Origin: Ophelia neglecta
Taxonomy: Eukaryota
Reading direction: 5' to 3'
DNA length: 64,000 bases
NCBI GenBank assembly: GCA_965285935.1
Contig: OZ260661.1
Span: 93,000,001 to 93,064,000 of the forward strand
Shown piece by piece: positions 9,201 to 57,400 of the stretch. Position numbers and translations under genes: made by a program. The number at the start of each line of letters is the position of its first letter. The first letter of the stretch is position 1. The notes under the pieces were generated by a model. It had not been told where the DNA came from and made no database searches. It was given only the letters and a program-made list of their open reading frames with translations.

Positions 9201-12200
9201 GACACGCCGGGCTCGCCGGGTGGTCCTGAAGGGCCGGCAGGTCCTCTGGGTCCAGGTTCACCCGCAGGGCCGCTTCTACCCACCTCACCTGCAAAAAAGC
9301 AATTTATTTTGAACACATGTAGATCAAGAGAGCGTAGCACTAGCTGTTGTGGTCCTATCTAAATCTTACCGCAATACGAAATCGCCAACTGCGCAGATCA
9401 TAGAAGTAGTTTTGTATTTCTTACCGCTTGATCCGGGTGATCCAGCTGGACCGGAGGGGCCGGTCGGTCCACTTGGCCCAGACGGTCCTCTTTCCCCTGA
9501 AGGCCCAGCTGGTCCAGCAGGTCCAGGTCTGCCTGAGGGTCCTGTTGGTCCCCTTTGCCCAGTTGGTCCTGATTGAGTTCCATCGGGTCCCCGTGGGCCA
9601 GTGGGCCCTGGCGGGCCGATGGGTCCAGGAAATCCCGGGCCGCCGCTGATGCCAGGCGGGCCTCGGAAACCGGGCTCACCTGAAGGTCCGGCTTGACCAG
9701 AAAACCCTGGTCCGCCTGGTCCTCCTGCGGGTCCGGCCGGTCCGCGTTGTCCTCGGTTACCTTAAAAAGAATCAAATATAACAATAGTTCCATTACAAAT
9801 GGTTGAGCAACTCAGTCCCAATGTTTCTGTTCCCAACTTCCGGTTATTTATTCTAGACATGTTAGGCCTAGGCCCTAATAGATTTCTTCAAAGTAGGAGT
9901 AGTCATATTCCACATATGTGACACTATATTATATTATATTTTTTACCTGATGGTCCAGTTCGTCCAGGTGGTCCAATTGGTCCTCCAGGTCCTGCAGGTC
10001 CTAGCTGTCCACTTGATCCTGGAGGCCCTACGGGGCCTCTTCCTCCGGCCGGTCCAACGGGTCCAGCTGGTCCAGCAGGTCCGGATGGTCCTGCTAGGCC
10101 TACTTCACCTGGCGAGCCAGGTCCACCCGGAGGCCCAGGAAATCCGGGTCGGCCGGGTGGGCCACGTGGGCCGGGTTGACCTGGTTGGGAGCCGCGTGGC
10201 CCTGTACCGCCTTTGTCTCCAGCGGGTCCTCGTGGCCCCGCTGGTCCAACACTACCTGGGGGACCACTGGGTCCTTGAGGTCCGGGTCGTCCAGCTGGGC
10301 CGAGAGGTCCTCGTCCGCCGGGAGGTCCTGTAGCACCTGAAGAGCCTGGTGGCCCTCGAACGCCATCAGTGCCCGGTGTCCCGGCCGATCCGGCAGGACC
10401 AGTTCCTCCTGTTGCGCCTCGGGGACCACCTGGTCCAGGCGGTCCTATAAGAAAACCCATGGTATCAAGCGCTTGACATGCAATTCAGATTTAATAACCA
10501 TACAAATTTAACCTTTAATTTACGGTTCTACAAGGAGGTTGCTATTTATCTCCTTTTAAAGAAGAACAACTGACAGCCAATCAAATGTATTTTTAAAAAG
10601 ATTTGTCTTTCTTTTAAATATAGATATACATTTCTATCATTAATAGGCCTTATATGAATCTAATTGTGAATAAAGAAGTAAAATCAAGAAGGTCAATGAC
10701 AAGGTCTTACGTTATATAAAATCAAGCATATTCCGCTTCATGTATGGTGTAATTAAGACTAATTAAATTATCGTTTTCTAATTTGATATGAACCGCATTT
10801 GGGTATATTTTATTCATGCTGTGCATGTGTAATGATTAGGTGCATGAGGGTAAGGGACATTCATTTGCAACAGCGATTTGTTTCAATTTTTAAAGATAAA
10901 TGGGATATCGAATGACGTCCTGCAAAACAGCAATTATATACTATACTAGCATCTATAGTTGAAGATATTAATAATACAAAGGTTGTCTTTCACAGAAAAA
11001 TCTTACAAAACACAATTTTAGCCCCTTCGAGCGAAGTTTCCTGTTATAACTTATCTTTCCGGAAATATTTTAGAACACTTTATCTGTGAAAGACAGCCAG
11101 TGGTAAGGAGAAAGGGCACCCAGTTTGAAGAGACAAATCATTTTCATACTGTGCTCAAATATGTTTCATCGTGCAGGGATAATTTGTGAACTAAAATCAG
11201 ATGGTCACTGACAATGGTGTCAGAGTTACTAATTTTTCAGTGCGGTGAGTAGTACAGAGATAGCTCATTCTGGCGCAGACGATACATGCAAGAGATAAGT
11301 AGCAGTGACCATATGGTTTTATTTCATTTTTAAAGCCTGCAGTAAATATGGATTTATGCGTTTAACTTTCAAACATATAGATCAAAATCATGTCATTTAT
11401 CATCTTTGGGTGCGCTTCATCCTTGATGTGACTTATATTACAGTGATTTGTGCATATTGATGTTGTTTGATTGCCAATATAGCCGCGCAATATAAAGAAC
11501 ACAGCGCAACGCAAGAAAATGTATAGAGGGTTGGGGCGTTGCGGTAAACTTCGTCCTATACCTGGAATGGGTACGGGGCCTGGGGCTACAATGTATCCAG
11601 GACAGATGGTCCTCATCAGTCTTTCGACCAGGATCTCTCTCTCCCGAGCGGAGCCATAGCCCTCAGATACGTAGTAGGCACGACTGGTGGTTGAGGCGAT
11701 CACCTGGAGGGCCCCCAAATTGATTCCCGATCCAAAGCCTACAGAGGTGATGACGATGTTGTTATCCACTCTAGCTCTATTCAGCTGAGTTACAAACTCT
11801 CTCTCCGGCTCTCGGCCCATGATGACGATGGCGAAATCGGGGATTCTTGGTCGATCTCCCCGGCCTCCACTGAATATGCTATCGGTCATCACCCGGAGTC
11901 CCTCGTCCAGGAAGTGATCGGATCGACTCATCCTGCTAAGGGTATTGATTCTTTGTCGCACCTCCAGATTGGTGTAGTAGCGATCAAGGTAGAATGACAC
12001 CTCCCCTACGCTACTATAGCGGACGGTTGAAAAATGAACATTAGGCTCGCCGATAGTGAACTGTTGGGAGAGGAGACTTGCAAGATCTCTCATTGAGTCC
12101 CACAGCAGGTTGGAGAGGTCCTCTCCGGCGTCCAGCACTATCGCCACATCGCTGAGGTTCCGACATCCTGTGCGGATATGAAAAGCAATTATTGTTTGAA

Positions 12201-14882
12201 AAGAAAAAGCGCCAGCAAGCGTGCCGCATCTAGCGAACCGCTAGCCATCACCTACGCATGCGCAACAGAATAACGAGAAGCGATGCATGTTGAACGCTAC
12301 ACGACAAACACAATGTAAATAAACCTCTAGAGTACACATGTGCCATACAGGAGTTAAACCAAAAGTAGCAATCACGCTTTTTTAAATAGTAAATATCTCA
12401 ATAGGCGTATTCACATTGCGTGTGTCGTGCAATGAAACGCAGCATAAAGCGCACGCGCAGAAGCCATACTTGTACAGGAACCCAGGTGATGGAGTACCCG
12501 AACAGGCTACATTTTATCTTTGGAGCTTCCTCTTCTTTGTTTTCTGGCGAATAGATATCTGCCTACATTGAAAGGAGGAAGCGCACATCACATAGAGTGA
12601 TGAAGGTCAAGTTCTAGCAGAACGCGTTGTAGACAGAGGAGAGGCGGAGTGATATCTGTACGCCCTAAAGATCTCGCAGGATCATATGCTTTTGACAGAT
12701 CAAATGAGATAAAGGCATGCAACGATCCGATGAAGCTGAAATTTAAGAAATATTTGATGGTTGTCAATGGACACGCGCACACACTAAATGCTCGAGTAAA
12801 ATTACCTGTTCCGAGTACACGTTGGTCGGATCCTGAAAAATGCGAATATTCCTCGTCATTAATTAAGGAAGCCATTGATATACATGTGTGGACAGAATTT
12901 GGGAAAATAATTCACTTGATTCATGGAGATCACGAAAACTTGTTTGTTCGCGAATAATCTGAAGAACAAGGAGACATTTTATTTAGGCCCTATTGATAAT
13001 TAACGAAATCGGGAATTTCATGAATTTCGACCAATGACGTATCAAGTGTTCGACGGCGACTTTATCTTCATGGGTCTACATGTATTAAACTTTACTGTCG
13101 CACACGATTTATGTGTTTTAAATCATTCTATTAAACAATACATGTACTACAATAATGACTAATGACCTATACCTAATCTAAAGGCCACGCCACAAGCATT
13201 TGAAGAAGGCTCTGTATGTACCAGGAAGTTGGTACCAGGAATGGGGTATCCATCTATTACATGCCACTGGCAGATATAGGCAGTGAGATAAGAGTGAGGA
13301 GGGTTATCACAGAAAATGGCGATGTATCTATATATTGAGGTGGAAGATGGGATTGAGCGTATTGAATACGAGATGAAGGGCCTAATGACTGGATATGGAG
13401 AGAGCTGGATGGGGTTGGGGAGACCCTCGGCCTGGCGGTTAAAGTGAGACGGGCAGCCCCTGGATATCCCCTTGTTCCGATGCTTAGCTTGTGAATATTA
13501 GATGTGGAATGGATGGGTTTGTCATAGTGAGAAGATATAATCGAAACATCGCCTTCCAAATGTGTTGATTTGAAGATCATATTGAATATTAGGGGACTAT
13601 AGACCGGGGTCTTTTCGAAATTCATGAACAACAAATAGGCTTACTAAATGATTGCTATACATTTATTAAACCCATGTGCTTCTTTTTGTAATGGAATTCA
13701 CGAAATTCACGGAAACATCGACATGATTATATCATTTGTGTTGGGAATTCATTTTTCTTTTTGTCATCATTTCACTTGTGTAATTGTTTCCTTTTATAAG
13801 TTTGAAATGGTTGATTTTTTAATCTCTAATTCACGAATTAACAGTGTTCATTATCTCCCAAATCCTGTCCATCTCTGTGGATTGTACAAGGCCAATTATT
13901 CTCAGAGTTCTAGGCCTCTGACGTCATCTCTCTGACGTCATCTCCAACTCGCGATAAGGAACTCCTAAATCTCAACTCTCTAATTACGCAGTAAATATTA
14001 TGAAATTAAATTTTCTAATGGCAAAATATGAAAATAAACTGTGAGAAAATGTTAGAAATTAAGATAAAATTCAAAGTAGTCGAAATGAAATTTAGTGTAC
14101 ATTTGACATGTCTATAGTTGCACATATTATGTATAATCGTTTTAATTCAATAATCGTCGGATCCAATATAAGTCGAAGAAAAAGAAGACATAATAATTTG
14201 CCTTCAATGCAATAAGTATGAAGTATCAAAAGCAGACGATATTTTTGCAACTAATAAGACGAAATGACAGGCATCATAAACTAATTCATTTCTCTACTTG
14301 TGCAGGACTATTTGTTTAAAGATTAAACAAGATATGTAAGTCTGTTGAATCAAAAAGTGGGAAAAAAAAACTACTCGAAGAGTAAACTGATCTTGGGTTG
14401 TATTTCTGCTTATTATTTCATTCATCAATAAGATTAAGATTGGAAATTGCTTCTATGCAAAATGGGACGCATTCTTATTTCGAAAATATTCGAGTGATGT
14501 GACTGGTTTGCAGTGGTAACTCAGGTTATTATCTGAGATGTTATGTGTAAATAATTAAACAGGGAATTAGAACTTGGTCCAGAAAAACTCATTCATTTTA
14601 CAAACAATCCAATGATCAGTAAACTCTAGAAACAGATATGTAAAGAAAACGGAAATAAATATAATTAAAAAAAAACGTAACAGTTAACAGTTGGTTTAAC
14701 ATGAAATTAACTATAAGTAAATCGAAGTACTATTAGAACTAAGAAAGAACGTGACACTAAACTAAAGGTTGGTGCGTGGTCTAGATTATCTTACCTTGTG
14801 CATCTATGACTGTCACGAAATTGAACATGAAGATGAACGCCAGAGCACAAGCTCTGGCGTCCGCTAATCTTGGCGGTCGCAT
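1..14882 (-). CDS. Gene A: secreted giant collagen alpha chain with N-terminal vWA domain (multi-exon, 3' end outside window)
   Basis: Spliced GT-AG model: 14882-14795 (signal peptide), 12167-11562 (vWA), then Gly-X-Y exons 10444-9947, 9760-9425, 9288-9139, 8836-8252, 8104-7877, 7684-7241, 7026-6658, 6505-6281, 6028-5903, 5791-5252, 5137-4922, 4545-4396, 4230-3637, 3473-3126, 2447-2223, 2008-1658, 1463-789, 611-486, 264-<1. All junctions are phase 1 and keep the frame; ~2150 collagenous residues lie in the window. Confidence 0.93.
486..611 (-). CDS. Gene A collagen exon, 126 nt (14 triplets)
   Basis: Gly-X-Y, AG/GT flanks, phase 1-1. Confidence 0.9.
789..1463 (-). CDS. Gene A collagen exon, 675 nt (75 triplets)
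   Basis: Gly-X-Y, AG/GT flanks. Confidence 0.92.
1658..2008 (-). CDS. Gene A collagen exon, 351 nt (39 triplets)
   Basis: Gly-X-Y part of ORF 1620..2021, AG/GT flanks. Confidence 0.9.
2223..2447 (-). CDS. Gene A collagen exon, 225 nt (25 triplets)
   Basis: Gly-X-Y part of ORF 2179..2484. Confidence 0.9.
3126..3473 (-). CDS. Gene A collagen exon, 348 nt, with GPTVTG interruption
   Basis: Gly-X-Y part of ORF 3118..3543. Confidence 0.9.
3637..4230 (-). CDS. Gene A collagen exon, 594 nt (66 triplets)
   Basis: Gly-X-Y part of ORF 3503..4246. Confidence 0.92.
4396..4545 (-). CDS. Gene A collagen exon, 150 nt, with G-G-GER break
   Basis: [14 protein letters not shown]...GLP, AG/GT flanks. Confidence 0.88.
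4922..5137 (-). CDS. Gene A collagen exon, 216 nt (24 triplets)
   Basis: Gly-X-Y, AG/GT flanks. Confidence 0.88.
5252..5791 (-). CDS. Gene A collagen exon, 540 nt (60 triplets)
   Basis: Gly-X-Y part of ORF 5229..5807. Confidence 0.92.
5903..6028 (-). CDS. Gene A collagen exon, 126 nt (14 triplets)
   Basis: Gly-X-Y, AG/GT flanks. Confidence 0.88.
6281..6505 (-). CDS. Gene A collagen exon, 225 nt (25 triplets)
   Basis: Gly-X-Y, AG/GT flanks. Confidence 0.9.
6658..7026 (-). CDS. Gene A collagen exon, 369 nt (41 triplets)
   Basis: Gly-X-Y, AG/GT flanks. Confidence 0.9.
7241..7684 (-). CDS. Gene A collagen exon, 444 nt, with GSEAG interruption
   Basis: Gly-X-Y, AG/GT flanks. Confidence 0.9.
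7877..8104 (-). CDS. Gene A collagen exon, 228 nt, with GSEPG interruption
   Basis: Gly-X-Y part of ORF 7857..8132. Confidence 0.88.
8252..8836 (-). CDS. Gene A collagen exon, 585 nt (65 triplets)
   Basis: Gly-X-Y part of ORF 8238..8855. Confidence 0.92.
9139..9288 (-). CDS. Gene A collagen exon, 150 nt, with GSSPAG interruption
   Basis: Gly-X-Y part of ORF 9128..9340. Confidence 0.9.
9425..9760 (-). CDS. Gene A collagen exon, 336 nt, with GTQSG interruption
   Basis: Gly-X-Y, AG/GT flanks. Confidence 0.9.
9947..10444 (-). CDS. Gene A first collagen exon, 498 nt, with GSQPG interruption
   Basis: Gly-X-Y part of ORF 9924..10460. Confidence 0.92.
10981..11098. mobile_element. Small MITE-like element with ~20-bp terminal inverted repeats
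   Basis: GGTTGTCTTTCACAGAAAAA ... TTTATCTGTGAAAGACAGCC (18/20 inverted match) in a gene A intron. Confidence 0.5.
11562..12167 (-). CDS. Gene A vWA domain exon (606 nt, phase 1-1), degenerate MIDAS
   Basis: [17 protein letters not shown]...[10 protein letters not shown]...[17 protein letters not shown]...ITSVGFG...LQVIAS...ICPG; typical vWA pattern with flanking Cys. Confidence 0.92.
12806..12832 (-). CDS. Candidate 27-nt phase 1-1 microexon of gene A (GSDQRVLGT)
   Basis: tttttcag acceptor and CAG|gtaatt donor; in frame between the signal and vWA exons; no transcript evidence. Confidence 0.35.
14795..14882 (-). CDS. Gene A start and signal peptide (exon spans 14930-14795)
   Basis: [29 protein letters not shown]|G; G|gtaag donor; polypyrimidine-cag acceptor at 14931. 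Confidence 0.85.
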
Positions 14883-15158
14883 TGTGCGGGTCACTTATTT
14901 TGCGGATCTATAACGTTTTCTTCACAAAATCTGACAAAAAGAAGAAAATATTTTGTGTTGTATAGTTAAGCAAAAATGTTTTTTGAAATCTGAGATATTC
15001 TGTTAACATAAGAGGATATTAAATCTTAGTTAGATGCCAAGTTTATTTTCTGCGACCTAGTATGGTTTGACTCTCTGGCGCAATGCGATAAATGGTAGTA
15101 GTAAACGAAAGAACAACTACAAAGAACAGCAGAAAGTAGTGTATGGTATAATTACCTT

Positions 15159-15194
15159 CTAAACATTCAGTCCCGCGTGACTATCTCGATACAT
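15159..15194 (-). promoter_or_regulatory. uORF MYRDSHAGLNV* in gene A 5'UTR
   Basis: ATG...TAG followed by AAG|GT; positional counterpart in gene B. Confidence 0.6.
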
Positions 15195-15230
15195 GTCCTT
15201 CAGACCCGCTAAAATGTGTTTTTTTTACTC

Positions 15231-15331
15231 AGCCCTATAGGCCTGGTCGGGCCTTGTCTGGACAACTGGCTCCCGCCGTTCACGAGGCTCAGCTAAATCA
15301 GACAAGGCCTTCCGACGACTCGCCTTGGCTA
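15231..15331 (-). promoter_or_regulatory. Conserved 5'UTR RNA stem-loop element, copy A
   Basis: 11-bp stem GGCCUUGUCUG/CAGACAAGGCC (15309-15299 with 15260-15250); shared with gene B copy. Confidence 0.8.
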
Positions 15332-18300
15332 CCGTTCGGAAAGAAAACCGAACTCACCTGGAAAACATAAACGGAAAACATGAACACATCAGATCGTGAT
15401 CACAGATGTGTGCTATCGGTATTTCCTTTGGCGGGGGTGACATTTTTAGGAAATTCAAGATGATATGAATAATTCATTCAAGATAATATTTAAAATTCAT
15501 AAATCATGTAATAGTTATTTAAACTTCGCATTTCCCATCATTCTCCAACCATGTTTGTACACCCTGCAATTAATGGTTTAATACAGAAAACAAGTACGTG
15601 GCTTATGATTTGCAAGTTAATAAAAAGTATCTTAACACATTGGTTTCGTTTGTATAATTTATATCTACATCGTTCCGGGGACAGAAGAAACACAATTGTT
15701 TATTTAACCTTGTTATAATAAAATACTGCGCTGGTAATGTTTGACTTTTGATATTTTTATTTCAGTTTATTTTACCAACTACAAAACTACTGATGAAAAC
15801 AGGTCCTACTAGATAGAAGCGAGGCGCACACCCGTAACGTGTCAGCCTGACCAAGTTTTATCACAAACTGGCAAATCGTGACCACAAAATACAAGTCGTT
15901 ACTATGTCTGTCTTTTTTTGACGTCTGCAGTTTGAAGGGCTCATGATGAACGAGCTTGTGGTTTTTAACTTTATATGATGAATGAAAACGACTTGCTTTT
16001 AATCTAAAAATACTACAGAGAAATAGTTTGGTTACATAACCAAAACCAAAAAACACTTATGTATAACTTTACCAGCGACAGTGTTTTTTCAATAATTTCA
16101 GACAAGTAGGTTTTCTACTTTATTTTATTTTTTTAATGCGTGAACCGGTTGAAAAGTTTATTCAATAAGCCTAGAGATGTAAAAATACTGACAAATTCGG
16201 GATGCCACAGCCCATTGACATGAGACTCCTTGCCAAAATATCCCTTTTTGTTACTACCTTACCATGCAGGACAATAGCTTCCCCCATCTCCAAAGATGCA
16301 GTGACTTAACCGACAAAGGATTCAATTTATCGTTGCCTAGACGTCAGGCGAGTTAATTACTTGCTTGTATTTAAAATATTAATTAACGCTTAATTGTCGT
16401 CTTTATTTTGTAGGACCGTCTCATTAGCATACACAGACGCTAATTCAACACAAGAATTGTAGCTTAAAAGTTTATACCTTTCTATATTTAACAAATATAT
16501 GTTAAGTTTTTACACGTTAATGACTCCCCGCTTTAGCCTTGTGCCGTAGGGTGATCTTGTATTTAAGGGACACGCGCCACGATTGTGGAATACAATCCCA
16601 CAGAACACTTAGGCAATGTTCTGTGCTGGGTGTTTAATAAAAGATATCTAAAGTAATATCTAATGAAAATTGCCTTCGATTTGTTATGTCTTAATATGTA
16701 AACTAATGTTATTAGTGGCAGTGTTCAAGTAATCATGGGACATACTTTACCCTTAGTTAGGTTTCATAAATAATATTAACCAGGTCTTCCCTGCCTAATT
16801 TACTATTATAACAAAATTACTTGTGGCTTTGCTAATTACACTGTAGTATTAATGATAAATAAAACTCGAGAACCAATGTCGGGAAAACTTGTAAAATACA
16901 TAATGAAAGCAAGCATCTGTTTCGTTATTTTATTCCTACGAAGAGGCCTGAGGGGTATGATGAGACACGTAAATATACTTTAATTCTTCAACATGACAAA
17001 TTGACATAATCGTTTCAGAAATGATACGAGTAGCTTGCTGGAGGCTATAGATTCGACATTGTCCATCCATTCGTTTCTCTTTGGCTGTAGGTTATGGAAC
17101 GTATTTGCTATAAATATGACACCCTGACTGACAGGTACGGGTCTGTATAGAAGCGCAAGTCTTTACTATTTCAACTATAGGCATACTATAGTATTTCATA
17201 ACCAAACATAACGTTTTGTCCGACAATATACAGGCCTAGCTACATGAATATTGGTAACACCGCAGTTCAGCAATGCTAACAACAAATTTCACTGAGTATG
17301 AAATGCTGCTTGTATTCTGAGAATCATCGATGCTATATTCACATTTTCATCATTGATTAATTTCGTGGAAACCAAAATATATATGCATAGACTAGATTTT
17401 CTACCTGTGAAGAACTAGACCTACATGGGCATGAGACGAATTCTGCTGGTCAGTGCGTTCATTGAAGAACGGACATTTACCAGATGAATGAATGTTTAAA
17501 GGACGCCCTGCCGATTTATTTAAAGTTTGACTGGAATAACAACAAAAGACTTGCTTCAATATAAAGCCTTAGTGTCATCAGCACCATGATTGAGCTTTTA
17601 GTTTCAACCTTATATAGAATGGGCGCCAATGCATAAAAACCCTTCGTGCCACTGAATGGAAGTTGGAGAGATCGGAAGGGAGTTCAACATAGGTTAACTC
17701 TACAGGAGTTGCTATGGGTGGTCAGAGATATGTGCTCTGGTCCTTCTTTATTGCAAAATTCTTTTTTTTTTCTTCAGATAAAAGCTTCAGAATGATTTAG
17801 ATAATTAAGCCCGGCACTAATACAAAATGTTCACGTGTGATAACCAAATATGGCTTTTAAAAACAGGGTGATAATTTTTCTAGTGTTTATTATTGTCGTC
17901 TGCAGATGAATGTCAATTTACAAGGACGTATATTTCTGTTCCTTATTTCATTTACCCCAAGAAAAGCAACAAGTTTTGAAGGTCATGACCAGATTTCACT
18001 TGGAAGATGGGGAGATGACTTTCTTCCCTCCATCCCCACCCGGACGCCGCCGAAACTCCCCTGTGACCACTCATGGATGGAAAAATAATGGCTATGGACA
18101 AATCTGCCAGCCTCCAACCGACACAAAAACCGCCAATATAGGCATCTAAACATATAAATCATCGTATCCACCATAGCCATTTTCATATAGACCTATGGTG
18201 CCAGGACTATCTATTGTGCCAGGACTATCAGTGCGAAAATCAGAGCGTTTGGGTAGCAAAGGAGGATATATATGCCTAGAATGTTATACACTAAGGGTGG

Positions 18301-31000: not shown

Positions 31001-31693
31001 ACAAAGCACTAACCCACCTCTCACCTGATCTTCAGTACGTACCTAACTCAATCAATCTTACATATACCTAGCCACCTCATGGCTGACAATTGGTTCAGTA
31101 CATGTTTTTTCTAATGCTCAGATTCCAAAGCTACTGTTATGACATGAGACGACAAAAACCCCTGAGATTGGTTCAACCAGTGTGTAACACGGGGTAATAC
31201 CTATGTCTAACCCACTGTAGTCTCCTATATAAACACCTAGGTGCGGGCTTATAAACCAGATAACATCAGGACAATAAAAAGTGACACAACCACAAGTTCG
31301 TTCGCTATACATCTGTACTAGAAAAATGACTGGATCGGCCAGAAACGGAGACCGCATTTTGAAAACAAAGGTGCCCTTAATAATGTTTTGTGGCTGAAAA
31401 GCTGACAGTATAACTTAAGATATTTAAAATTGATGAGGGGGAACTTTTAAAACAAGGATGGTTATAATGATGCTTTGTATTTTGTTTTTGCGGTGAATAG
31501 AACATGGTTAATCAAATCTTTAGATATATAAAACAGAATTTTGAATTGAGCATCCAACCCTAAGATAAAATGGTTTGGTAAATGCTGTTCCTAAAAACAT
31601 CTCCTTCCATCTAGGTAAGTGTCGATATTCCATCAAGGAACCATCTCGCACCAACAGCATAAACATCTTTTCCCTCATCGTGGATTTATAGTA

Positions 31694-31864
31694 CAGTGAA
31701 ACCTGCCTTAAAGACCACCTCTGTTATCAGACTACCTGGCAATTCAGACCACTAATATCAGTATCATGCTTTCAATGGGAAATAACCTGTCTAAACAGAC
31801 CAACTCCGAAATCAGGCCAGCATTGTCAAGTCCCTTGGGTGGTCTTAATTCACAGGTTTCACTG
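31694..31864 (+). mobile_element. Tc1/mariner(pogo)-type MITE, family 1
   Basis: TA-CAGTGAAACCTG...CAGGTTTCACTG-TA; internal AGACCA sub-repeats; homologous to 37689-37866 and 38386-38743. Confidence 0.85.
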
Positions 31865-32046
31865 TAATGCCAAAAAGATGATAATTTCTGGTGATTGTAA
31901 TTGTTGTCTGAATGAATGTGAGGGGGGAATTAAACCACCAGCTAGAAAGCAAAGGTTCAATCACCTGAGAAACACAACGACTCCTAATCATAACCTAGAA
32001 TAAGCTGGATAAGCATGTTTAGACCCTATAAGTATAAACTCCACTA

Positions 32047-37305: not shown

Positions 37306-37688
37306 GTCATAATACATCCGGCCTAACGTACTGTACCGTCAACAAATGGTATAACGCTATGCTGGGTATCTAAGATTTATGCGGCCAGGATTTGAACAAA
37401 GCTTACTTCATTTGATCAAAATGCAATTTCATGAATTATAAATTATAATAAATGAAATAAACTAGGTTGGGTGGGTCGGTTAAAACATAAGTTGAAACAC
37501 AGAAAATACAAATAATTGCTGTTCACGCATAAATATAGGCTCATTGGCGTGAAAGGAACATCAATGACTGACAAATTAATTTAATACTAGAGTGTTTACC
37601 AATTCTAGCCAGCTAGTTTGCAATTGCAAAATACCTATGGCAGAGTGTCCGGTCCGGCTGGTACACAGACAGTGCTCGTTTAAATATA

Positions 37689-37866
37689 CAGTGAAACCTG
37701 TGAATAAAGACCACCCAAGGGACAGGAAAATCCTGGTCTGATTTTGGAGGTGGTCTGTTGTGACAGGTTATTTAACATTGAAAGTATACAACCTGGTCAT
37801 TATATTAGTGGTCTGAATTGACAGGTGGTCTGAATGTAGAGGTGGTCTTTAAGGCAGGTTTTACTG
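37689..37866 (-). mobile_element. MITE family 1, inverted orientation
   Basis: TA-CAGTGAAACCTGTGAAT...GGTGGTCTTTAAGGCAGGTTTTACTG-TA. Confidence 0.85.
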
Positions 37867-38312
37867 TATGCCTACAAATGATTCATTAGATAACTGTTTG
37901 AATGATATCACTTACAGGCGCTTTGTGGCTTAAAATATATGTTGGTTGTAACACAAGCTTAAACATATTTGTATGAATGCATGCCTCATAATTATATTTG
38001 TCGATTCAACTAGTTGGTTATAATAACATAACAGTGTATAAGTACATTGTGACTTAAAATGCCTCTTTACCATTGACATAATAACATAGTTTTCTATTGA
38101 GCGTAGCATTGACACAAATCCTTTCTTTGGATCGAGACACATAGATAATTTGCCCTACGCCATACTAAATTCTGCCACATTGCCTCGTTACCCAATAAGC
38201 ACAGTTAAGACACATGTGATGTAGAACAGGTAAAGACTCATAGGATTGAATTGCTTTGCCTTACATTCAATTTCTCTACATTTTCAAAAATGTAGCCACC
38301 AAAGGCACCATC

Positions 38313-38743
38313 TGGTAATAAACTCTATAATCAGACCAATATTTGCCAGTCCCTTCGGTGGTCTTGATTTACAGGTTTCACTGTACAGTGAAACCTGCCT
38401 TAAAGACCACCTCTATATTCAGACCACCTGCCAATTCAGACCACCAACACCAAGACCATAGTATACTCTTTTAATGTAAAATAACTTGTGTAATCAGACC
38501 ACCTCTATAATCAGACCAGTATTTTCCAGTCCATTCGGTGGTCGCAATTCACAGGTGTCACTGTACAGTAAAACCTGCCTTAAAGACCACCTCTATATTC
38601 AGACCACCTGCCAATTCAGACCATCAACACCAAGACCATGTTATACTCTTTTTATGTTAACTAACCTGTGAAATCAGACCACCTCTATAATCAGACCAGT
38701 ATTTGCCAGTCCCTTCGGTGGGTTCATTTCACAGGTTTCACTG
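38313..38743 (+). mobile_element. Tandem array of MITE family 1 (partial copy plus 38386-38563 and 38566-38743; 180-bp period)
   Basis: CACTG-TA-CAGT junctions at 38384 and 38564; near-identical units. Confidence 0.88.
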
Positions 38744-41700
38744 TATATAGATAAATGTACCTGCTGTAAATCGTTAAAGCTTGGTGAACACAATAAAGCG
38801 CTTGAGGTGGGTTTGGCATGAAAACCGCCAAATTTGCATGAGCCAAATAAAATATTAAGTTAAGTATTATACGTTATACACACAATTAAAATGGGAAGGG
38901 GTGGGATAGAAGATTGAAGAGGAATATAGAGTTGTGTTTTCATATTTGGAAAAAAAACATTTAGTCTCTCTGGATCAGGCTACCAGTCCTAAGAACTTTC
39001 GCCAAAAAAAAGCAGGTTTGAGGCCGCACTACAAAAAGAACTTGGCGAGTTATTTCCTGAGTATGCCCACTTGTTTCTGACAAATTGACAAATCATTTAT
39101 ACCTTGCCCTGTCATCTGCCCGAATCAGAAATCAAAATTGAAACATAAAGGTCTCCCGAGGTGCTATTTAGAAACTTTCCCTATCAGCCGACGAGGTGTC
39201 AGTTTTGTAGCTTTTCTCCCAACTTGGTCAAACTTTATAAACGCGCTTTTCGACTAATTTCATTAAGTTAATTTTATTGGATCTTATCTCTGTATATATA
39301 TAAAATAAACCGTGATGTGTTTAAATTCAGCTGTAGAAAGTCGCTAGCTGAAAATATTACACCGTGATTAACTTTTCTGCTCAAACTTCTGGGGGTTTAG
39401 TGAGAAATACTTTCTCTCGCCCACAAACACTGGTATTCTAGGTATTATAAAAAAAAGCTATCACATGGAAGGTAGGTCCAAGAAAAAATTCTAAAACATA
39501 AATCATGTCTGATCTGCTAGTAACATATACGACACATTTGATGATACACCTAATGCCATTATATTTCTCTATCCATATGGTAGTCTGTTTTTCTTTAATA
39601 TGTTATCCAGGTGAAAAATAAAAAGCTTCTTAGCTTTTGGTATAAAGAGGTCCTTTGCCTGGTTTAATCGTTCGAGTCCGTTTTTTATAAATTCTAGGGC
39701 AATCTTTTACCTTTCATTATTCGCAAATAATAGTATCACGGTCACGAGCTTGAATGCATATATATAATTTCTGAAAATATTATTTTATGTCACCAAGTTG
39801 GGTTTTCAACTTGTTCACTTTTTTGTCGATTGGGCTATTTGATTTGGTTATTATTTCATCGGTTAATGTGCCGCAGTAACCTCCAATATCAGTAAATACG
39901 GTTAATATGATTGCTCTTTTAGAAAAACTGACCACTTTGCATAAATCTTCTGTTTAGTTTGGAGCAAAAACTGAACAACTGTTAAGCTGTGAAGACCCAC
40001 ATAACTCGACTGTGGTCCACTACATTGCATACGAGGTGTATTCCATTCCTCTGAGTGTCGTATTATCTTATTAGAGGATTTTTTTTGCAATAACAGTATA
40101 GACAGCCACACAAAGCTTTCCAGGGCCATTTTCAGAGCTCCACATGATTATGATTGAGGTTGCTCACTGTCCAAAGTACTCAGGACTGTGAGGTGTTGGC
40201 TTTGTAATCATAAACAATGGCATACTTCTGTGTGCATAAATCGTCTTTTACCTTCTGAGGAGTGTAGGTTACTAATTCGTGTAGTTCACCGATTCATTTT
40301 AACCAAAAGAAGCTTTAGGGTTCAGACCGAAACTTTTGTCTCTTGGCCCTTGACTCTTGAGGCTTTCTAAGCCTGTAGCACAGAACATTATCCGCATTAG
40401 GGGAGTATTAATTCCCCGCCACAACATTAACGCCAATAAGATATTATTATCAGGTTTCTTTAATACGTAGTTATATAATTTGTGCACTTAGGTGAATTTT
40501 ACAAGCGAGTAAATAATATATTTTAATAATCGTGGTTTTTAAAGAAGTAAGCGTTATTGTTATTTTGTATCTATCGATGTTTTATTTGCCACACTAATGC
40601 CAGCAATACACAATGGTTGTATATACTTGTAAGTTGGGTTGCACAGGTAATAAAGAACACAAGATGTAAATATTTAATAATAACTCATTGTGTGAAAGGG
40701 ATGAAAGAATTAATCACGGTGAAGCAGACGATCATACTTCACTTAGACTATGTATCACAGACATGTAATGGTCACAGTGTGATAAATATAATATGTTAAT
40801 ATATGATTAAAGATATTGGTAGGTCATTTTTACGGTTACCCTACAAAAAATATCAGATTGTCATCAAGAAACTACGGTAGGTTTATTATCGCCTGTAAAC
40901 ATAAGTAGGGGACATCGATATTGAATACTAATTTGATTAACGTAGCCGGGTTTTCTGTTATGTTGAGTTCAAGGCCCTCTAATAATTGGCCGGCGTACAG
41001 AACTAGAACGAATAGTGATTAATGCCAAATCAATACTTATTAAACAGTATACAGTTCTTTAAGTAAGCCATAGCACAAAACTTGAGCCTTTCTGTCTCTG
41101 ACAGATTACTAGCATGATTTTTTCTTTGAATTGTCATTTGCATGTAGGCATTCCAGTCATTTGCTGGAATATTTCTTTTAATCACTTCTTGAAATAAGAA
41201 ACATTAGAAAATTATTTTTTCCTTAATTATATGTCTAGTTCATTTAAGCATGTTTAAGTAATTTAAATAGATAACAAATGAAAACTTTGCAATACAACTA
41301 TATTGAGGTTTTTTTTTAAGAAAATGCACACACCACGGCTACTGCATCACATTCGGGCAAATTGGGCTTCTTAAGTCATTGAGATGTTTTACCAGCTATA
41401 TACTCATTTGATAAAACCCCTGGAAGGAAGATATAAACTATTTGACCCCTGTTTTCTTTTTTCCACTTAATTAGATAATGACTGAGTTGTGTAAACTGTG
41501 AATCAATATACGTGGTTTCACTGTCATGTAACTTTAACATTATAACATTGTAATGAATGGTTCACAGGTTTTGTATCATGTGGCTTGTAAGAGAATGATT
41601 AAAGAATGTCAGAATCATTATAATCACAAAAACATCTGCCACATGCATATCTTCAACTTGAAAAACTTGAAAATGACTTCTAACTTATTGGCTTTAAATC

Positions 41701-49410: not shown

Positions 49411-50967
49411 TCTATCACCTTTTATATGGGGAACGTCCATATTGAATAGGCCTATGGTGAAATAAATAGTTTTCACCCATCTCGCTATTCCTTTGCCGAA
49501 TACCATTTTTGATGGTAGCTGATTTTGAGACTTATAATTTAGCATAGTTAACTTACTAAAATTTAGGGTACCGTAGGGCATTTCTAAATAGGTACTTACG
49601 TACTAAACATCAATACATGTATATGTTTGTTATTTAACGCAAACGTCGTGTCTTACAGGCAACGAACAGAACTATCATCGGCACAATGCCAGCGTGATGC
49701 AATATTGGAAGTCTATACTGTAATTGACACCTTGAATATCACAGTGAACTTGTTGACAAACAGATAAAAATTGCTGAATTGAATGTTACATTGATAGTTC
49801 ATTCCTAGACTAATATTATGTTAATATCGGCCACCGAAAAGCAAAAGAATGTACACTGTACTTGGTAATTAAAGAAAAGACTACAGGAAAAATATTTGTA
49901 TACTTCTACAGCCAGAGTTCAGTCAACAGGGTTTTCTAGGAAAAATATACCTGAAACAGACAAAGGACGTGCAACGAAGCATCCTTTTAAAGAAAGACAT
50001 TGCTTCGTACTGCCTAATTGGATGATTATAGCGGCTTTACTACTGGACAATAGGACAATGCCAGATATCTTTATTTAAAAAGTATCACTGTTCGATATAT
50101 TCAAATGAAATACAAGCTTTGAAATGCATACTTAATGTTATTCCTGCAATGATTCCAGATTATTATTTTGGGTATTCATTTGCAAAAATAACATGGCCTT
50201 TCTGCTGACAGCTAGCCTGTGTCACAATAGGCCTAGTGTAAATTGTATTTTAAATTGTAATGCCTATGTACAAGTACAACAGGTGACCAGAAGGTCATTG
50301 TGATCATTATGCCATTAATATAAAACTCATTTGGCGTGGAACCAACTACCATAAATATCAAAACATATTTCGCCTTATTACCTTTAAACCCACCCACAAC
50401 GGTTAATTTGGTGCCAATATTTTTCATTCTAGTAAGCCCTATTCAGTAACATAAATAGTTCATTCATATGTTACAACTATGTATATGATTGAATTTTCGA
50501 CAATTATACTGAGTTGCATGTATGTCTATTACTGGATTGTACCAGTCCTATAGGTGAACCAGGGTTCACCTTTGTGTGGTTAAGCTCGCAAAAATGAACA
50601 GCCAAGGGAATTTCTTAACGTATTACTCGGTGCTGTAAAACATGGACAAATCCTACGATTCAGACGAGTAAACAAATGGTTTTTTTGGTTTCCCTTTACT
50701 ATTTCTTATTTTCAGTCAATAAATAACAGTGGCATACATATATATAAGTCCGTATTGCCTCCTGTTTAGGAGAGAACAGTCGTAGGGGTTAAACTAATGT
50801 GCTTTTAAAATAAAGTTAACAAGAAGTAAGTTATTTAAGTAAAATTAATGTTGTATACAGAGATACTACAATGCGCGATTTTGTCTTAAAATTTATTACT
50901 TATCAGTCAGAGGATCTAAACAACATTTTCTTTTGCTTTCAGGATCCCTTGAGCCTGTTGTTGAAGC

Positions 50968-51060
50968 GGCCAAGGTAGTCCATTGGAAGGCCTTGTCTGT
51001 CGTTAGCTACACCTGACAACTCGGGTGTTGGTTGTCCAGACAAGGCCCGTTTATAAGGCC
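50968..51060 (+). promoter_or_regulatory. Conserved 5'UTR RNA stem-loop element, copy B
   Basis: GGCCUUGUCUG (50989-50999) pairs with CAGACAAGGCC (51037-51047); upper stem ACACCUGA-caac-UCGGGUGU. Confidence 0.8.
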
Positions 51061-51126
51061 CGTCAAAATTGTTTCTATTGTCTGGTGCTTCGCCAGACAA
51101 ACTTAAAACGGGCAGCGAAGAAAGAA

Positions 51127-51156
51127 ATGAATAGTAGTCCCCTACTTGACCAGTGA
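51127..51156 (+). promoter_or_regulatory. uORF MNSSPLLDQ* in gene B 5'UTR
   Basis: ATG...TGA followed by AAG|GT. Confidence 0.6.
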
Positions 51157-51338
51157 AAGGTAAGAACTACTGCCAGTGTAGTAGTATGAACAACTTTCTA
51201 CACCGAACTACTATTTAAGTTAGTAGCGTGATGTGTCGAGTTCCGCCACAATCAAAGTAGACTCGTGTAAAATGTTTTTTTATAATTTGAGGAATACCAT
51301 ATTTAAAATATTTCCTTTTTTCATTGTTAGAGTTGAAG

Positions 51339-51450
51339 ATGGAACCCCCGGGGTCTTCTTATAGAAGGCCATTCGGGTCACGTGAGACCTCACGTACCTT
51401 TGTTGCTCTACTGTTTTTCCTGAATGTGATAATTACAAGCGGTCAGAGAT
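51339..51450 (+). CDS. Gene B start and signal peptide (exon spans 51331-51450)
   Basis: [37 protein letters not shown]; T|gtaagt donor. Confidence 0.85.
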
Positions 51451-54400
51451 GTAAGTAGTTCTAAAGGATACTAGCCCAACCACCAATTAAAGGTAGAACT
51501 ATCCTCATCGTAAGCAGAAAATACATCTTCATTAAGCCTATAAAAATAGCATTAATATACTTGATGCTGCAGACTGAAAAAATGACATGATTGTGATTAA
51601 CTTTTCGTGATGATACTATAAGCACTATCTGTTGTTATTTCTTGCAGTTGATTGTACGGTACCCGCTGATGTGGCATTCGTTATAGACGCCAGTACAAGT
51701 ATTCCGAGTAACCAATGGACAACAGTATTACAATTCATTGTCAGTGTTACAGCCCGCCTGCAGGTGGGCGAGAACCAGATTCGAGTGGGCGCCACGCGTT
51801 ACGCCTCGGCGGCGAGCGCCCAGTTCACTCTGAACCGCTACTACGACCAATCGTCGTTGTCCTCAGCCATTCGGCGTATCAGCCGAATTGAAGGCTCGAC
51901 GAACACTGCGGCCGGTATTCGAATCACCCGGACTGACATCTTCAGGTAAACAATGCCAACACTTTGTACGGGTGACTTCGACCTCCCCCTCCCCCAATCA
52001 AATCGTCCACAGGCAGGGTTTTGTGTTGGAAAATAAGAAACAACAAAATTGAATTGAGTTGCCGAAAATCTTCATTTTCTTTGCTTCCTTCAGAATATGA
52101 ATAAAAACAACAGTTGAAGGCAAAAGAAGTGTTGATAAGCCTAAACACTATAGTATAATTCGTCTGAAGTCCTGTTAGCTGATTCGCTGATCTATCACTT
52201 TGCAAATGATTAACATATTACGTGGGAATCTAACGGTCAAACAACCGCACCCTAATGAAATCGGCGACCCCTTGACCAGCTTTGTCTTTCGTTTTTCAGT
52301 TTCGGTCGGGGTGATCGGGCTGACGTGCCTGACCGAATGATCATCATTACCGATGGTCGTTCAGATGACCGCACTCAAGCCATTTACCAAGCCAACCTGG
52401 CCAAGTCTTCCGGCATCAAAATCTTGACAGTGGGCATTGGGCCTGACTCGGATTTTGAAGAACTTCAACTGCTCGCCGATTCCCCGGCTGAGGCGCAGGT
52501 GCTGACGGTGGGACGCACAGAACAACTGGTGGGATTAATCTCCCCATTGGTGACTTATATCTGTCCATCTCCACCACGCATCGGTAAGTTCCCTAAGTAG
52601 TGTAATGCCTAAAACCAATTACTCATTTGCCTTTATCCATTTCAGACACAGGGCAAATATTGGATCCATTTCGACATGGAACATTCTAGTGTCGACGCCG
52701 TGGAGTGCGCGTCTTCAGCAGCGCAACTATATGCTTTATCGCGCGCTTTGATGATATTTTTGCCTGCCATGAGCGGACGCAAAGCAAAACACAACATTGG
52801 GGATATCAAACGAAAAAGAGGGCAAAAGAATGGTACATAAAGCAGCCCACATAGGAATTGCTAGTGATAAAAATAGGAAATGAGCAGGCTAGTTGCGCGC
52901 CGACGCCGAACAGTATATGGACACCTGTGAGCCGTTCGAGTGTTAACGCCGCACGGTAAAGAAGACTTTGGTGCGCGGTTTAGGCCTGCAATGAAATAAT
53001 AAACCAGAACTACTTGAACAAAACGTCATTCTGTCATTAACGTCGCTTTCGTTAACTTAGTTTACTATCTTCATTTCATTTAATAATTTTTTTAATTCCA
53101 ACTTTGCGCAAACAATGACAGATCGGCGTTCGGTTCAGTGGTATAAGGTCTAAATTCCATTGCATTTATGTGCTTCTTCATCAATATGGTTATGGTTGAA
53201 AGTGGGATTCTATGTGGTATATATACTAAAGTATCTGTTTGTCGCATTAAAACACGAGTCAATGTTATTGACCCATCAAACGCTTACTCGCAGTTCATGT
53301 TCACCAGCGGGGGTGATTGTGCCTAGACACCCTTAGTAATTTTAAGTTTTTGCCCAAATTAAAAATGGCACAGTGTTGTGTTTCCCCTGTCCTGTGCACG
53401 GTATTTCACCGGTTTGGCGCTGCTTTTCCTTCCTCGGGTCAATTCTATCTTTAAAAGGTTACATGCTTAGTGGGTTGCCATGTATTTGTTGGTCAATTCC
53501 ACAAAATATAGCGCAATGTCTGCTTATTCTTAAAATGGCGCACGCTGGTTTTATAATAGAGAGCGCTAGCTGTAATAATCACATAATGATTACGGGTCGC
53601 TTTGCGGGGTTTCGTTTCAGGAGAAGATACTGGATCGTACGCATGCGCTTACTAACATTTGCATAATAAATTCTATAAATAACTTATGTATTTTGCTTTG
53701 GATTGGTATCGTTGATCTTAATGGTGGTATATGTCCTGTTGTTTTGTTGTTATTATGTTTGTCGGTGCATTTTGCGAGCGCTTGCTGCTTTGGTTGGTTT
53801 TAACTATGTTTGCCCTTTGTTTTGCCCAACAGAATGCTTAAACAGCCTGGATCTTGCACTTGTCGTTGACGGCTCAACTAGCATTAGCCCTGAAATAGAG
53901 TGGACGCGAATCCAGACCTTTTTAGGGAATCTGGTCTCGGCTTTGCCGGTCAGCTCCTCTCGCACTCGGGTCGGTGTTATTCAATACAGTAACAACGCTA
54001 GAATTGAATGGCTTCTGAATGCCAACAATTACGAGCGACCCCGAATTGTCCAGCGTATCCGCACATTGCGTCAGATGCAGGGCAGCACCAACACATCTGG
54101 GGCCCTGTGGATGCTTCGGGAGAGGTTTTTCCAGACAAACTTAGGTGATCGTCGCGATGTGCCGAATGTTGCTATCATCGTTACTGATGGGCAGTCAAAC
54201 AGCCTCGAAGACACCGAAAGGGAGGCGCTGTGGGTCAAAAACACATTCCCCTCCATCATCACCATTGTCGTCGGAGTGACCAACGCTGTCAATGCTAGGG
54301 AGCTTGCCATCATCGCCTCGGACGACGGCAGAGGAAACCCTATGGTCGTGAGAGTACAGGACTTCGCCTCCCTAACCCTATCTCTCGAGGGGTTGCTTGG

Positions 54401-57400
54401 CACCGCCTGCGGAATTACCGTCACTAGCGGTGGAAGCGGTGGTAAAGAGAGCTAGCTGACTTGTTATAATCGCAAATAATAAAAATTTGTTTTCACTTGA
54501 GTTCTTATGTTATTGAAACATAAACCATATTGCTTACAAGTAGGCCTATATATAACTCATAGAATATCAGCATAGCCCACGTATTAAAATAGCAAATTTA
54601 TATATAAGAATTCCATTGAAATACCTTATAAAATTTTGAAAATACCCCCCAAAATTAAATTGCTTTAATGCTGACACGGACTTTGAATCATGCAGTGCCT
54701 GGTCCCCCCGGTCCGCCCGGCTCTATTGGATCAACCGGAGCGAGAGGACCACCCGGAGCAAACGGAAACCCCGGAAGAGATGGAAGTCCAGGATCTGCCG
54801 GAACTGCAGGAGTAGCGGGCCCACCAGGGCAAACTGGACCTATCGGTAAGCATTGTTTTAGTTCTTCCTGCCTATTAATTATCAATCATTTTACTTCTGT
54901 ACAAATTAAGCAATATTTACTAAGCTTTAAGTATTTCGTTATATAGTTGGATATATTTTGTAGGTCTATAATATGAAATAGTCTTGAAGGAACAATTATT
55001 ACAATTTAAAAAAAATCCTCCTTTTTTCCTGCAGGACCTTCCGGATCTGACGGACGACCTGGTCCTTCAGGTCCTTCTGGACCAGCAGGCCCATCAGGAC
55101 CGGCTGGACCACCCGGACCCCGCGGAGATACTGGCCCAGCCGGACCAGCCGGGTCTCGAGGAGAGGCAGGACCTGCCGGTCCACTCGGTCCTTCGGGCCC
55201 ATCTGGGCCTTCAGGACCACGGGGAGAACGCGGCCCAAGTGGACCATCAGGTCCAGCCGGGCCATCAGGACCAGCCGGGTCACGAGGCGAATCTGGATTC
55301 CCAGGACCAAGTGGGAGCGCAGGAGGCACTGGACCACCCGGGCCACCTGGGCCTTCCGGCCCTGCTGGATCACAAGGACCACCTGGAACAAATGGTGAAC
55401 TTGGACCCCCAGGACCCACCGGGCCCTCGGGACCACTTGGCCCCTCAGGAGGTACTGGACCATCCGGACCAAGAGGAGAATCTGGACCACCTGGGCCAGC
55501 CGGGCCATCAGGACCAAGAGGGCCATCAGGACCATCAGGGCCATCAGGCCCTGCCGGTTTCCCTGGTCCCGCAGGAGGCGCGGGAGCCACGGGATCACCC
55601 GGACCATTGGGGCCATCCGGACCGGCCGGTCCGTCAGGACCTAGAGGTGAGAGCCAATAATGACAAAGCTAGTTTATATAAATATAAAAAAATAATAGTA
55701 TGGTAAACCGCAAGTGCATTATCTGTAGCTGTAGACAATTAAACATCATTTTGAATATTTAGGCGACCGTGGAGAAGCTGGACCACCTGGACCTACTGGA
55801 CCGAGCGGCCCGACCGGACCTTCAGGCCAACAAGGTGGCACAGGGTTCCAAGGACCATCAGGATCACGAGGAGATGTCGGCCCAGCAGGACCCTCTGGAC
55901 CATCTGGACCACGAGGTCCATCCGGACCCTCAGGTACATTGTGCACATATATACTGGTAACATAACTAGGTTAACAATTCCCCTTGTAGGTCTGGTAGGT
56001 CAGCATGTTTTCAGTGGTCAATGATAAGCATGAGCTGCAAGGATGCATTGTGTAGGTGTATATTCATTAAGCGTTTGTGAATTTGTAGGTCCGCCCGGAC
56101 CATCCGGCCAACCAGGACCATCTGGACCCTCCGGACCAGCAGGGCCTTCTGGGCCTCGAGGCGAGACAGGTTTTGGTGGAGCCCAGGGTGGCACTGGAGG
56201 AACTGGATCACAAGGCGCCACAGGTGCTACTGGTCGCCCTGGCCCTACAGGGCCATCAGGACCGTTGGGGCCGACTGGACCGGCGGGGCCGTCAGGACCT
56301 TTGGGACAGTCCGGCGGAACAGGACCCTCAGGTATTCTTATCGAATAACTAAATCCATTCGAAACCTGAACATTTAATGATATATCAATTTATTCATCTA
56401 TGTTAGTCATTTACCTATTTTTGTTATCTATTTCTTCTGGTAATTCATATATCTGGTTACAGTTGTTACTGCTCAAAACAAATCCTACAGTGTATATGAA
56501 TACTTAAATATTTACATATTAAACGGAGAAATATTACAAGAATATTGTAAAGTAATGTGATAAAGCAATGAACCGTTACAACTAGTACACCCGTTGAAAT
56601 CCATTGAGAATGAAAGTCATTGTTCTCCTTTTTAGGACCACCTGGACCATTGGGACCCGCAGGACCAACTGGACCCCGTGGACCTGCCGGAGAGAGCGGA
56701 CCACCAGGACCCTCTGGACCACAAGGCTCCCGAGGTGAATCTGGACCAGCTGGACCATCAGGCCCAAGCGGATCTCCAGGAGAGCGGGGTGAATCCGGAT
56801 CTCCTGGACCATCTGGGCCATCCGGCTCAACTGGACAACCGGGATCTCGCGGCGAACCTGGACCACCCGGACCTACTGGACCATCCGGGCCCAGTGGACC
56901 TTCAGGTCCATCTGGCCCATCTGGTCCTCGTGGAGATAGAGGAGAAGCAGGACCCTCTGGGCCTTCGGGCCCAAGCGGTCCGTCTGGCCCCGCAGGTGCG
57001 TTCAGTCATTTGTACAAATTATTTTATTCTTTATATATTATGATAATGTTATGTTTTTGCTAAAGGAAATGTTTGAAGCCACGATTTATTTGTCTTCGTA
57101 GGAGAATCTGGACCTCCAGGGCCTTCTGGACCATCAGGACCTACTGGACCAACTGGACAATCTGGCGGTACTGGACCTCCCGGCCCCCTGGGGCCCTCAG
57201 GGAGACCCGGTCCATCAGGACCTGCTGGGCCAGGCGGGGAGAGAGGACCCGCTGGCGAGAGAGGGCCCGCAGGACCTGCCGGACCACCAGGTCCAAGCGG
57301 TCCTTCAGGATCTCGCGGAGAATCAGGACCATCAGGACCCGCCGGACCCAGCGGACCATCAGGTATATTTTGATTTTATGTGCTCTATACAGTAGCTTGT

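Follow-up and report, generated by a model that had tools for sequence, protein, structure and literature searches.

In vertebrates, the collagen stem-loop known as 5'SL and LARP6, the protein that binds it with nanomolar affinity, constitute one of the main pathways by which collagen is controlled and are a target of anti-fibrotic drugs. To our knowledge, the literature assigns this stem-loop exclusively to the mRNAs of type I and III collagens. It is found in the COL1A1, COL1A2 and COL3A1 transcripts, where it is bound by LARP6, comprises 46-48 nt, lies 75-85 nt from the cap and spans the start codon (PMC4813270, PMC4615758, PMC12288881). Between its two stems lies an internal loop of 9 nt; this loop is conserved and is what the protein reads, and the stem sequences are dispensable (PMC4813270, PMC4615758, PMC12288881). 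Five bases of the loop (A,U / C,A,G) are essential, with the sequence of the stem being free (PMC4615758, PMC12288881). Reviews report the 5'SL in no other mRNA, other collagens included (PMC4813270), and invertebrate LARP6 proteins are devoid of the long RRM loop 3 that is required for 5'SL binding (PMC4615758). A full-text search of a literature collection brought up no description of a hairpin in the leaders of invertebrate collagens. Our results reveal a stable hairpin of 48-60 nt that is located 55-120 nt upstream of the start codons of four collagen genes. We propose, with somewhat better than even confidence and based on sequence comparisons, that this element acts in cis as a structured RNA signal within the 5'UTRs of an invertebrate collagen mRNA family, which would be read sequence-specifically by a protein and control or coordinate the translation of the encoded chains.

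The window, i.e., the whole 64,000-nt stretch of DNA analysed here, contains a head-to-head pair of VWA-collagen genes, termed A and B. An intron-free HSP70 encoded in the same genome reaches at most 77-80% identity to HSP70 from bivalves and the annelid Owenia, with comparable values for some other animals, which weakly points to a spiralian lacking close relatives among the proteins searched. Gene B, on the plus strand, is predicted to have a non-coding leader exon of 217 nt (50943-51159), which is preceded by a pyrimidine tract and CAG and ends at GAAAG/GTAAGA, followed by an ATG exon that encodes a signal peptide (51331-51450, ATG at 51339), exons for two VWA domains (51650-54455) and Gly-X-Y exons from ~54.6 kb to the window end. 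Gene A, on the minus strand, has a predicted leader exon of 202 nt (15156-15357; preceded by a pyrimidine tract and CCAG and ending at AGAAG/GTAAUU), an ATG exon that likewise encodes a signal peptide (14795-14907, ATG at 14882-14880; its acceptor is uncertain, with an alternative at 14930), a single VWA domain exon (11362-12165) and then collagen exons towards position 1. The original prediction had placed the element in an exon of 202-217 nt directly before the ATG exon; these sizes and this position do fit consensus splice sites, although the exons themselves are predicted from sequence alone, and the exon structure and transcription start of both genes should be read as deductions from splice consensus. 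The acceptor of the gene A leader exon (15357-15362, minus strand) reads CCAG/GUGAGU and is also a perfect donor consensus; the sole reason for reading it as an acceptor is that the aligned position in gene B holds a plain one. A search for sequencing runs of this organism found none of RNA. Three runs cover the region, and since their contigs pass over the introns without joints, they represent DNA. Among these contigs, which derive from one sample, 21 single-base differences were detected in positions 49500-53000 and none in the 549 nt from 50681 to 51229, a gap around the leader exon of gene B that is not significant alone, with ~1.3 differences expected in the exon. The region between the two genes contains a 180-bp tandem repeat (38323-38745; 2.3 copies, 90% matches) with related intergenic copies at 37687-37868 and 31692-31866, 0.5 kb and 6.5 kb off.

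In gene B, the core hairpin (59 nt) is located at positions 50989-51047 of the plus strand, where it folds with -34.3 kcal/mol (z = -6.35). The other copy, which the original prediction had described for gene A, was located by pattern search at 15250-15309 on the minus strand; it comprises 60 nt and folds with -35.5 kcal/mol (z = -5.92). The two hairpins are 35.6 kb apart and in inverted orientation. The gene B hairpin has a lower stem of 11 bp (GGCCUUGUCUG/CAGACAAGGCC), an asymmetric internal loop with UCGU on its 5' side and UC on its 3' side and a middle stem of 6 bp (UAGCUA/UGGUUG) that includes three G-U pairs; above it, a single bulged nucleotide leads into an apical stem of 7 bp capped by a loop of 4 nt. 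Its counterpart in gene A is identical in the lower stem and in the 3' UC of the internal loop, has UAGCUG/CAGUUG as its middle stem and ends in an apical stem-loop whose sequence is unlike that of gene B. The gene B letters at 50968-51060, the extent originally assigned to the element, match the earlier reading, and on the plus strand this extended segment folds with -41 kcal/mol (z = -4.3), with none of 200 dinucleotide shuffles folding equally well; the corresponding extended copy of gene A spans 15228-15332, with its sense direction on the minus strand. The basal stem proposed to close these extended elements (GGCC/GGCC in gene B versus AGCC/GGCU in gene A) did not hold up, being neither conserved nor robust: it is present only in folds of 93-105 nt, is superseded by other pairings in whole-exon folds and is without counterpart in the two further copies described below.

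The element is no repeat family, given that an exact search for its two-arm pattern detected only two copies in the 762-Mb genome. Covariance models built from the A and B copies or from all four known sequences returned the same two copies only, among the best 150 candidates scored, and searches for half-sites with one mismatch in the 762-Mb genome produced extra matches without a hairpin. A blastn comparison of the A side with the B side identified the element as the sole non-coding island common to both gene fronts, set in unrelated flanks. Membership in a MITE or other transposon family, which would entail many dispersed copies, was rejected on the basis of the two copies in 762 Mb.

Scanning of metagenome contigs for the two arms with a gap of 25-55 nt returned seven loci, two of which, L010 and L013, are true homologues that also carry the inner blocks UUAGCUG and CAGUUGUC. 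In L010, the hairpin (137-184, 48 nt) precedes an ATG at position 246, which opens a frame for a signal peptide followed by collagen that runs without interruption for at least 1215 aa. In L013, the hairpin (4340-4284, minus strand) precedes an ATG at 4228, where a frame begins that encodes a signal peptide, then VWA-like regions and collagen, and stays open for 1409 aa to the contig end. Both hairpins are in sense orientation just 5' of intron-free collagen frames, and the L013 contig terminates 105 nt upstream of its hairpin, as a transcript would, suggesting that the two contigs are transcripts. A pattern search of the 762-Mb genome found neither of these two hairpins, and the best likeness of the L013 VWA region in that genome amounts to only 25-34% identity, which argues that both copies come from other organisms. 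The signal peptides of gene A, gene B and L010 all begin with M-x-P-P. The number of VWA regions varies, with one in gene A, two in gene B, none in L010 and two VWA-like regions in L013, so that the hairpin accompanies collagen genes of differing domain make-up. A comparison of the gene B VWA exon with representative proteins retrieved nothing but multi-VWA proteins, which were at most 39% identical, and those of its matches with at least 300 Gly-X-Y residues all contain only ~305-335 of them, the collagen VI pattern; a search with the VWA exon gave nothing within its length range. For L013, a protein search with the N-terminus retrieved only distant vertebrate collagen VI, and no exact protein is on record.

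The remaining five metagenome loci (L007, L008, L009, L011 and L012) were rejected as homologues: they share only the 11-nt arms, have an unrelated inner sequence, adjoin no collagen gene and probably represent chance matches or other palindromes. In two of them, on unrelated contigs (L011:1027-1092 and L012:1319-1384), the 11-nt arms form the outer ends of an extended, almost perfect palindrome with a partial direct repeat behind it, probably a repeat of some microbe.

The distribution of the four copies bears on the idea that the element is neutral or selfish DNA, either the remnant of a MITE or a patch of gene conversion between paralogues. Its terminal inverted repeats and the presence of two inverted copies 35 kb apart are features that such an origin would explain. 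However, there are just two copies in 762 Mb, in unrelated flanks, and the same place relative to the ATG is occupied in two collagen genes of other organisms that have no close relative in this genome, making this origin exceedingly improbable.

A comparison of the four copies shows that the hairpin is built from a lower stem of 11 invariant base pairs, a small asymmetric loop, a near-invariant 6-bp middle stem with G-U pairs and a freely varying apical extension. There are 34 core bases that are invariant in all of them, comprising 11 in the 5' arm, the block UUAGCU and 17 in GUUGUCCAGACAAGGCC. The hairpin is thus far better conserved than the proteins, whose VWA domains are 23% identical when A is compared with B, and 34% identical, across a portion of the domain, when L013 is compared with B. 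The internal loops have 3-4 nt on the 5' side (UCGU, AUU, CUU and AUU) and the 2 nt UC on the 3' side, with no A or G on the latter. The spacing between the arms ranges from 26 to 38 nt, and the variable insert still pairs. Within it, the apical part is 9-21 nt long, differs in sequence and, in L010, consists of little beyond the loop; in the minimum-energy folds, the apical loops read CAAC, GAACG, GGACA and AACCA. The notion that the apical stems differ entirely in sequence but still pair is borne out by the folds, in each of which pairing occurs, but is statistically clear in gene B only (p = 0.001, as opposed to 0.13 for A and 0.17 for L013).

The original prediction had stressed compensatory base changes in the element. 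The middle-stem differences it gave for the step from gene A to gene B, U-A to U-G and G-C to A-U, are indeed present, and the latter is a double change that keeps the pairing. Across the four copies, however, 15 of the 17 alignable pairs are invariant, one shows the two-sided change from G-C to A-U and one is changed on one side only, from U-A to U-G, with both changes found in gene B, so that covariation had been overstated. A covariation statistic was matched by 132 of 500 shuffles; with four sequences and 15 of 17 pairs invariant, statistics of this kind carry no weight. The dominant signal is the invariance of the sequence, not covariation.

This pattern is informative with respect to a purely structural brake, in which stability alone would lower translation in the absence of a specific reader. 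The stability of the hairpin exceeds that of shuffled sequences in all four copies (z from -5.1 to -6.4) and is retained in whole-exon folds. The core accounts for -30 to -35 kcal/mol, enough to slow ribosomes by what is known of scanning, and short folds that include the flanks of the gene A and gene B hairpins reach -41 to -51 kcal/mol. A mere brake would permit compensatory drift, yet 34 bases, loop residues and two G-U pairs among them, are frozen across genes whose VWA identity is 23-34%, and we therefore consider this explanation unlikely. Since it is the sequence and not the pairing alone that is frozen, a sequence-specific trans-acting factor may be inferred.

The G-U pairs of the middle stem had been taken as a sign of a function at the RNA rather than the DNA level, and the additional copies strengthen this case. 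All four copies retain the same two G-U pairs without change, and strand-specific folding against shuffled controls gave a stable fold that was invariably better on the sense strand, which beats the antisense strand by 5.6-8.0 kcal/mol because the middle stem pairs only through G-U and is lost on the opposite strand. Moreover, the further copies are again located before two collagen frames. An alternative to be weighed here is a DNA-level regulatory site, with the inverted 11-bp arms, each of which holds a CAGACA/GTCTG motif, serving as transcription factor sites just 3' of the promoter and the RNA fold arising as a by-product. This motif is of the kind known as SMAD 'CAGA' boxes, which occur in the promoters of collagen genes and other TGF-beta targets. 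Both arms are invariant rather than covarying, as expected for protein-binding DNA, and a promoter-proximal site would agree with where the element is located, close to the 5' end of the genes. In addition, the CAGACAA/TTGTCTG motif is found once more in the gene B leader, where the lower-stem motif is re-used in a second small hairpin (51078-51100, plus strand; UUGUCUGG / CCAGACAA with a 7-nt loop). Pairs of TTGTCTG and CAGACAA that are at most 120 nt apart occur in the window only in the two elements and this small hairpin, the one further pairing listed being formed by the 5' arm of the main element and the 3' arm of the small hairpin. What a DNA site leaves unexplained are the inner blocks UUAGCU and GUUGUC, which are asymmetric and complementary only via G-U pairs, that is, on the sense strand only, as well as the arm spacing of 26-38 nt with an insert that pairs, for which a dimeric factor site has no need. 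In genes A and B, the element also follows a predicted splice acceptor and would thus not lie beside the start site. Together, the G-U pairs and strand energies, the asymmetric inner blocks, the maintenance of pairing at variable arm spacing and the position between the 5' end of the contig and the ATG in transcript-like contigs favour a role of the sense-strand RNA, and we assign the DNA-level explanation a low probability.

If the element acts as RNA, its identical arms could in principle pair different collagen mRNAs with each other and thereby co-localize them for heterotrimer assembly. Arm identity among paralogues is precisely what such trans pairing needs, but the A:B duplex (-58.1 kcal/mol) is 11.7 kcal/mol less stable than the two separate hairpins (-69.8 kcal/mol), and the double change in gene B, which keeps the intramolecular pair, would produce an A-C mismatch if the two mRNAs paired. 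Such pairing of A with B was rejected on energetic grounds, and trans pairing as the function of the element is most improbable.

The arms and the variable apical region also call to mind a microRNA-like precursor residing in the leader exon, with the arms as mature strands. Invariant arms and a variable apical loop do resemble animal pre-miRNAs. These, however, are built on a stem of some three helical turns that is extended basally for Drosha and give rise to products of 21-23 nt, whereas the stem found here comprises just 19-24 bp, too short for canonical Drosha/Dicer processing, and the L010 copy has a length of 48 nt, no basal extension and unpaired flanks. Searches of Rfam returned no match at the gathering score in the whole window, and around both copies, at E-values of up to 10, they gave no credible match, none to a microRNA or an iron-responsive element and none covering the hairpin on the sense strand. 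A further dissimilarity is that the hairpin, which matches no Rfam family, lies within exonic sequence of a highly specialised mRNA; cleavage would destroy this structural-protein mRNA. A microRNA-like origin is thus very unlikely.

A protein-read signal in the leader, the reading we prefer, may operate as follows. A mid-leader hairpin of such stability (-30 to -35 kcal/mol, or -41 to -51 kcal/mol with flanks) would impede scanning. An RNA-binding protein, as the simplest candidate for the trans-acting factor, probably recognises the internal loop and the two stems that flank it, and its binding would set the passage of scanning ribosomes across the barrier of -30 to -35 kcal/mol or, alternatively, the place or time of translation. 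The presence of the hairpin in both members of the head-to-head pair suggests a coordinated synthesis of partner chains, and co-assembling collagen chains such as the paralogues A and B would in this manner be produced in concert. Short upstream reading frames may belong to the same control. In three of the four leaders, such a frame ends 11-12 nt before the main AUG, and the encoded peptides are unrelated. It comprises nine codons in gene B (51127-51156, plus strand; its stop is 11 nt ahead of the main AUG once the leader is spliced), seven codons in gene A (15166-15156 plus 14907-14895, minus strand), where it spans the predicted junction, and six codons in L010 (L010:213-233); the L013 leader has no short upstream reading frame. 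Use of the alternative acceptor at 14930 would lengthen the gene A frame to 16 codons and put its end 8 nt upstream of the AUG. The hairpin itself lies 55 nt (L013), 61 nt (L010), ~119 nt (A) and 120 nt (B) upstream of the AUG, with the distances in spliced leaders obtained by arithmetic on the coordinates.

Among the described leader signals, the iron-responsive element of ferritin 5'UTRs offers one point of comparison. It is characterized by a CAGUGN apical loop, a C bulge and covarying stems. Like the hairpin described here, it is located in the 5' leader and common to several mRNAs, which it places under joint control by gating their translation, and it is read by a protein, as we infer for the collagen hairpin. 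The latter contains neither the apical CAGUGN nor the C bulge, and the distribution of constraint is different, with a free apical loop and frozen stems.

The vertebrate 5'SL provides a closer parallel. In both cases, a conserved stem-loop of ~48-60 nt in a collagen 5' leader is common to paralogous chains that assemble with each other, with two helices arranged around an internal loop, and the location in the leader of a collagen mRNA, upstream of the ATG, applies to all four genes (by predicted splice sites in A and B). By analogy, the hairpin may work in a manner similar to the 5'SL. However, the 5'SL spans the start codon, whereas the AUG lies 55-120 nt downstream of the element described here, and in place of a conserved 9-nt loop there is one of 5-6 nt with a variable 5' side, flanked by invariant stems. 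With the AUG outside, a loop of 5-6 nt and conservation of the stems rather than the loop, the hairpin is not a member of the 5'SL family, and a comparison of the two sequences revealed no likeness. The genome does contain a LARP6-like gene (G000:C8:21685263-21686579, minus strand; locus L030:1450-2766), a single-exon frame of 438 aa containing a La motif and, at its C-terminus, a SUZ-C motif, which attests to the presence of such a gene in the genome and is not evidence of hairpin binding. It is tempting to speculate that non-vertebrate collagen mRNAs own a dedicated leader stem-loop system, in which the hairpin, either independently evolved or ancestral and diverged, would be the counterpart of the 5'SL and, once read by a LARP6 orthologue or another protein, couple the translation of partner chains at the ER; we regard this extension as rather doubtful.

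If such a dedicated system did exist outside the vertebrates, the stem-loop-gated, coordinated synthesis of chains would be a general requirement of collagens and not a vertebrate invention. A second, unrelated and more strictly conserved hairpin would suggest a rule by which co-folding collagen chains repeatedly gain a private leader signal. It would, moreover, offer an independent system for asking what such a signal does, be it in setting the stoichiometry of the chains, their targeting to the ER or bursts of synthesis, and the element is short, sharply defined and easily tested. Collectively, the hairpin has the appearance of a new signal for translation control that can be compared with the collagen stem-loop of vertebrates yet is distinct from it.
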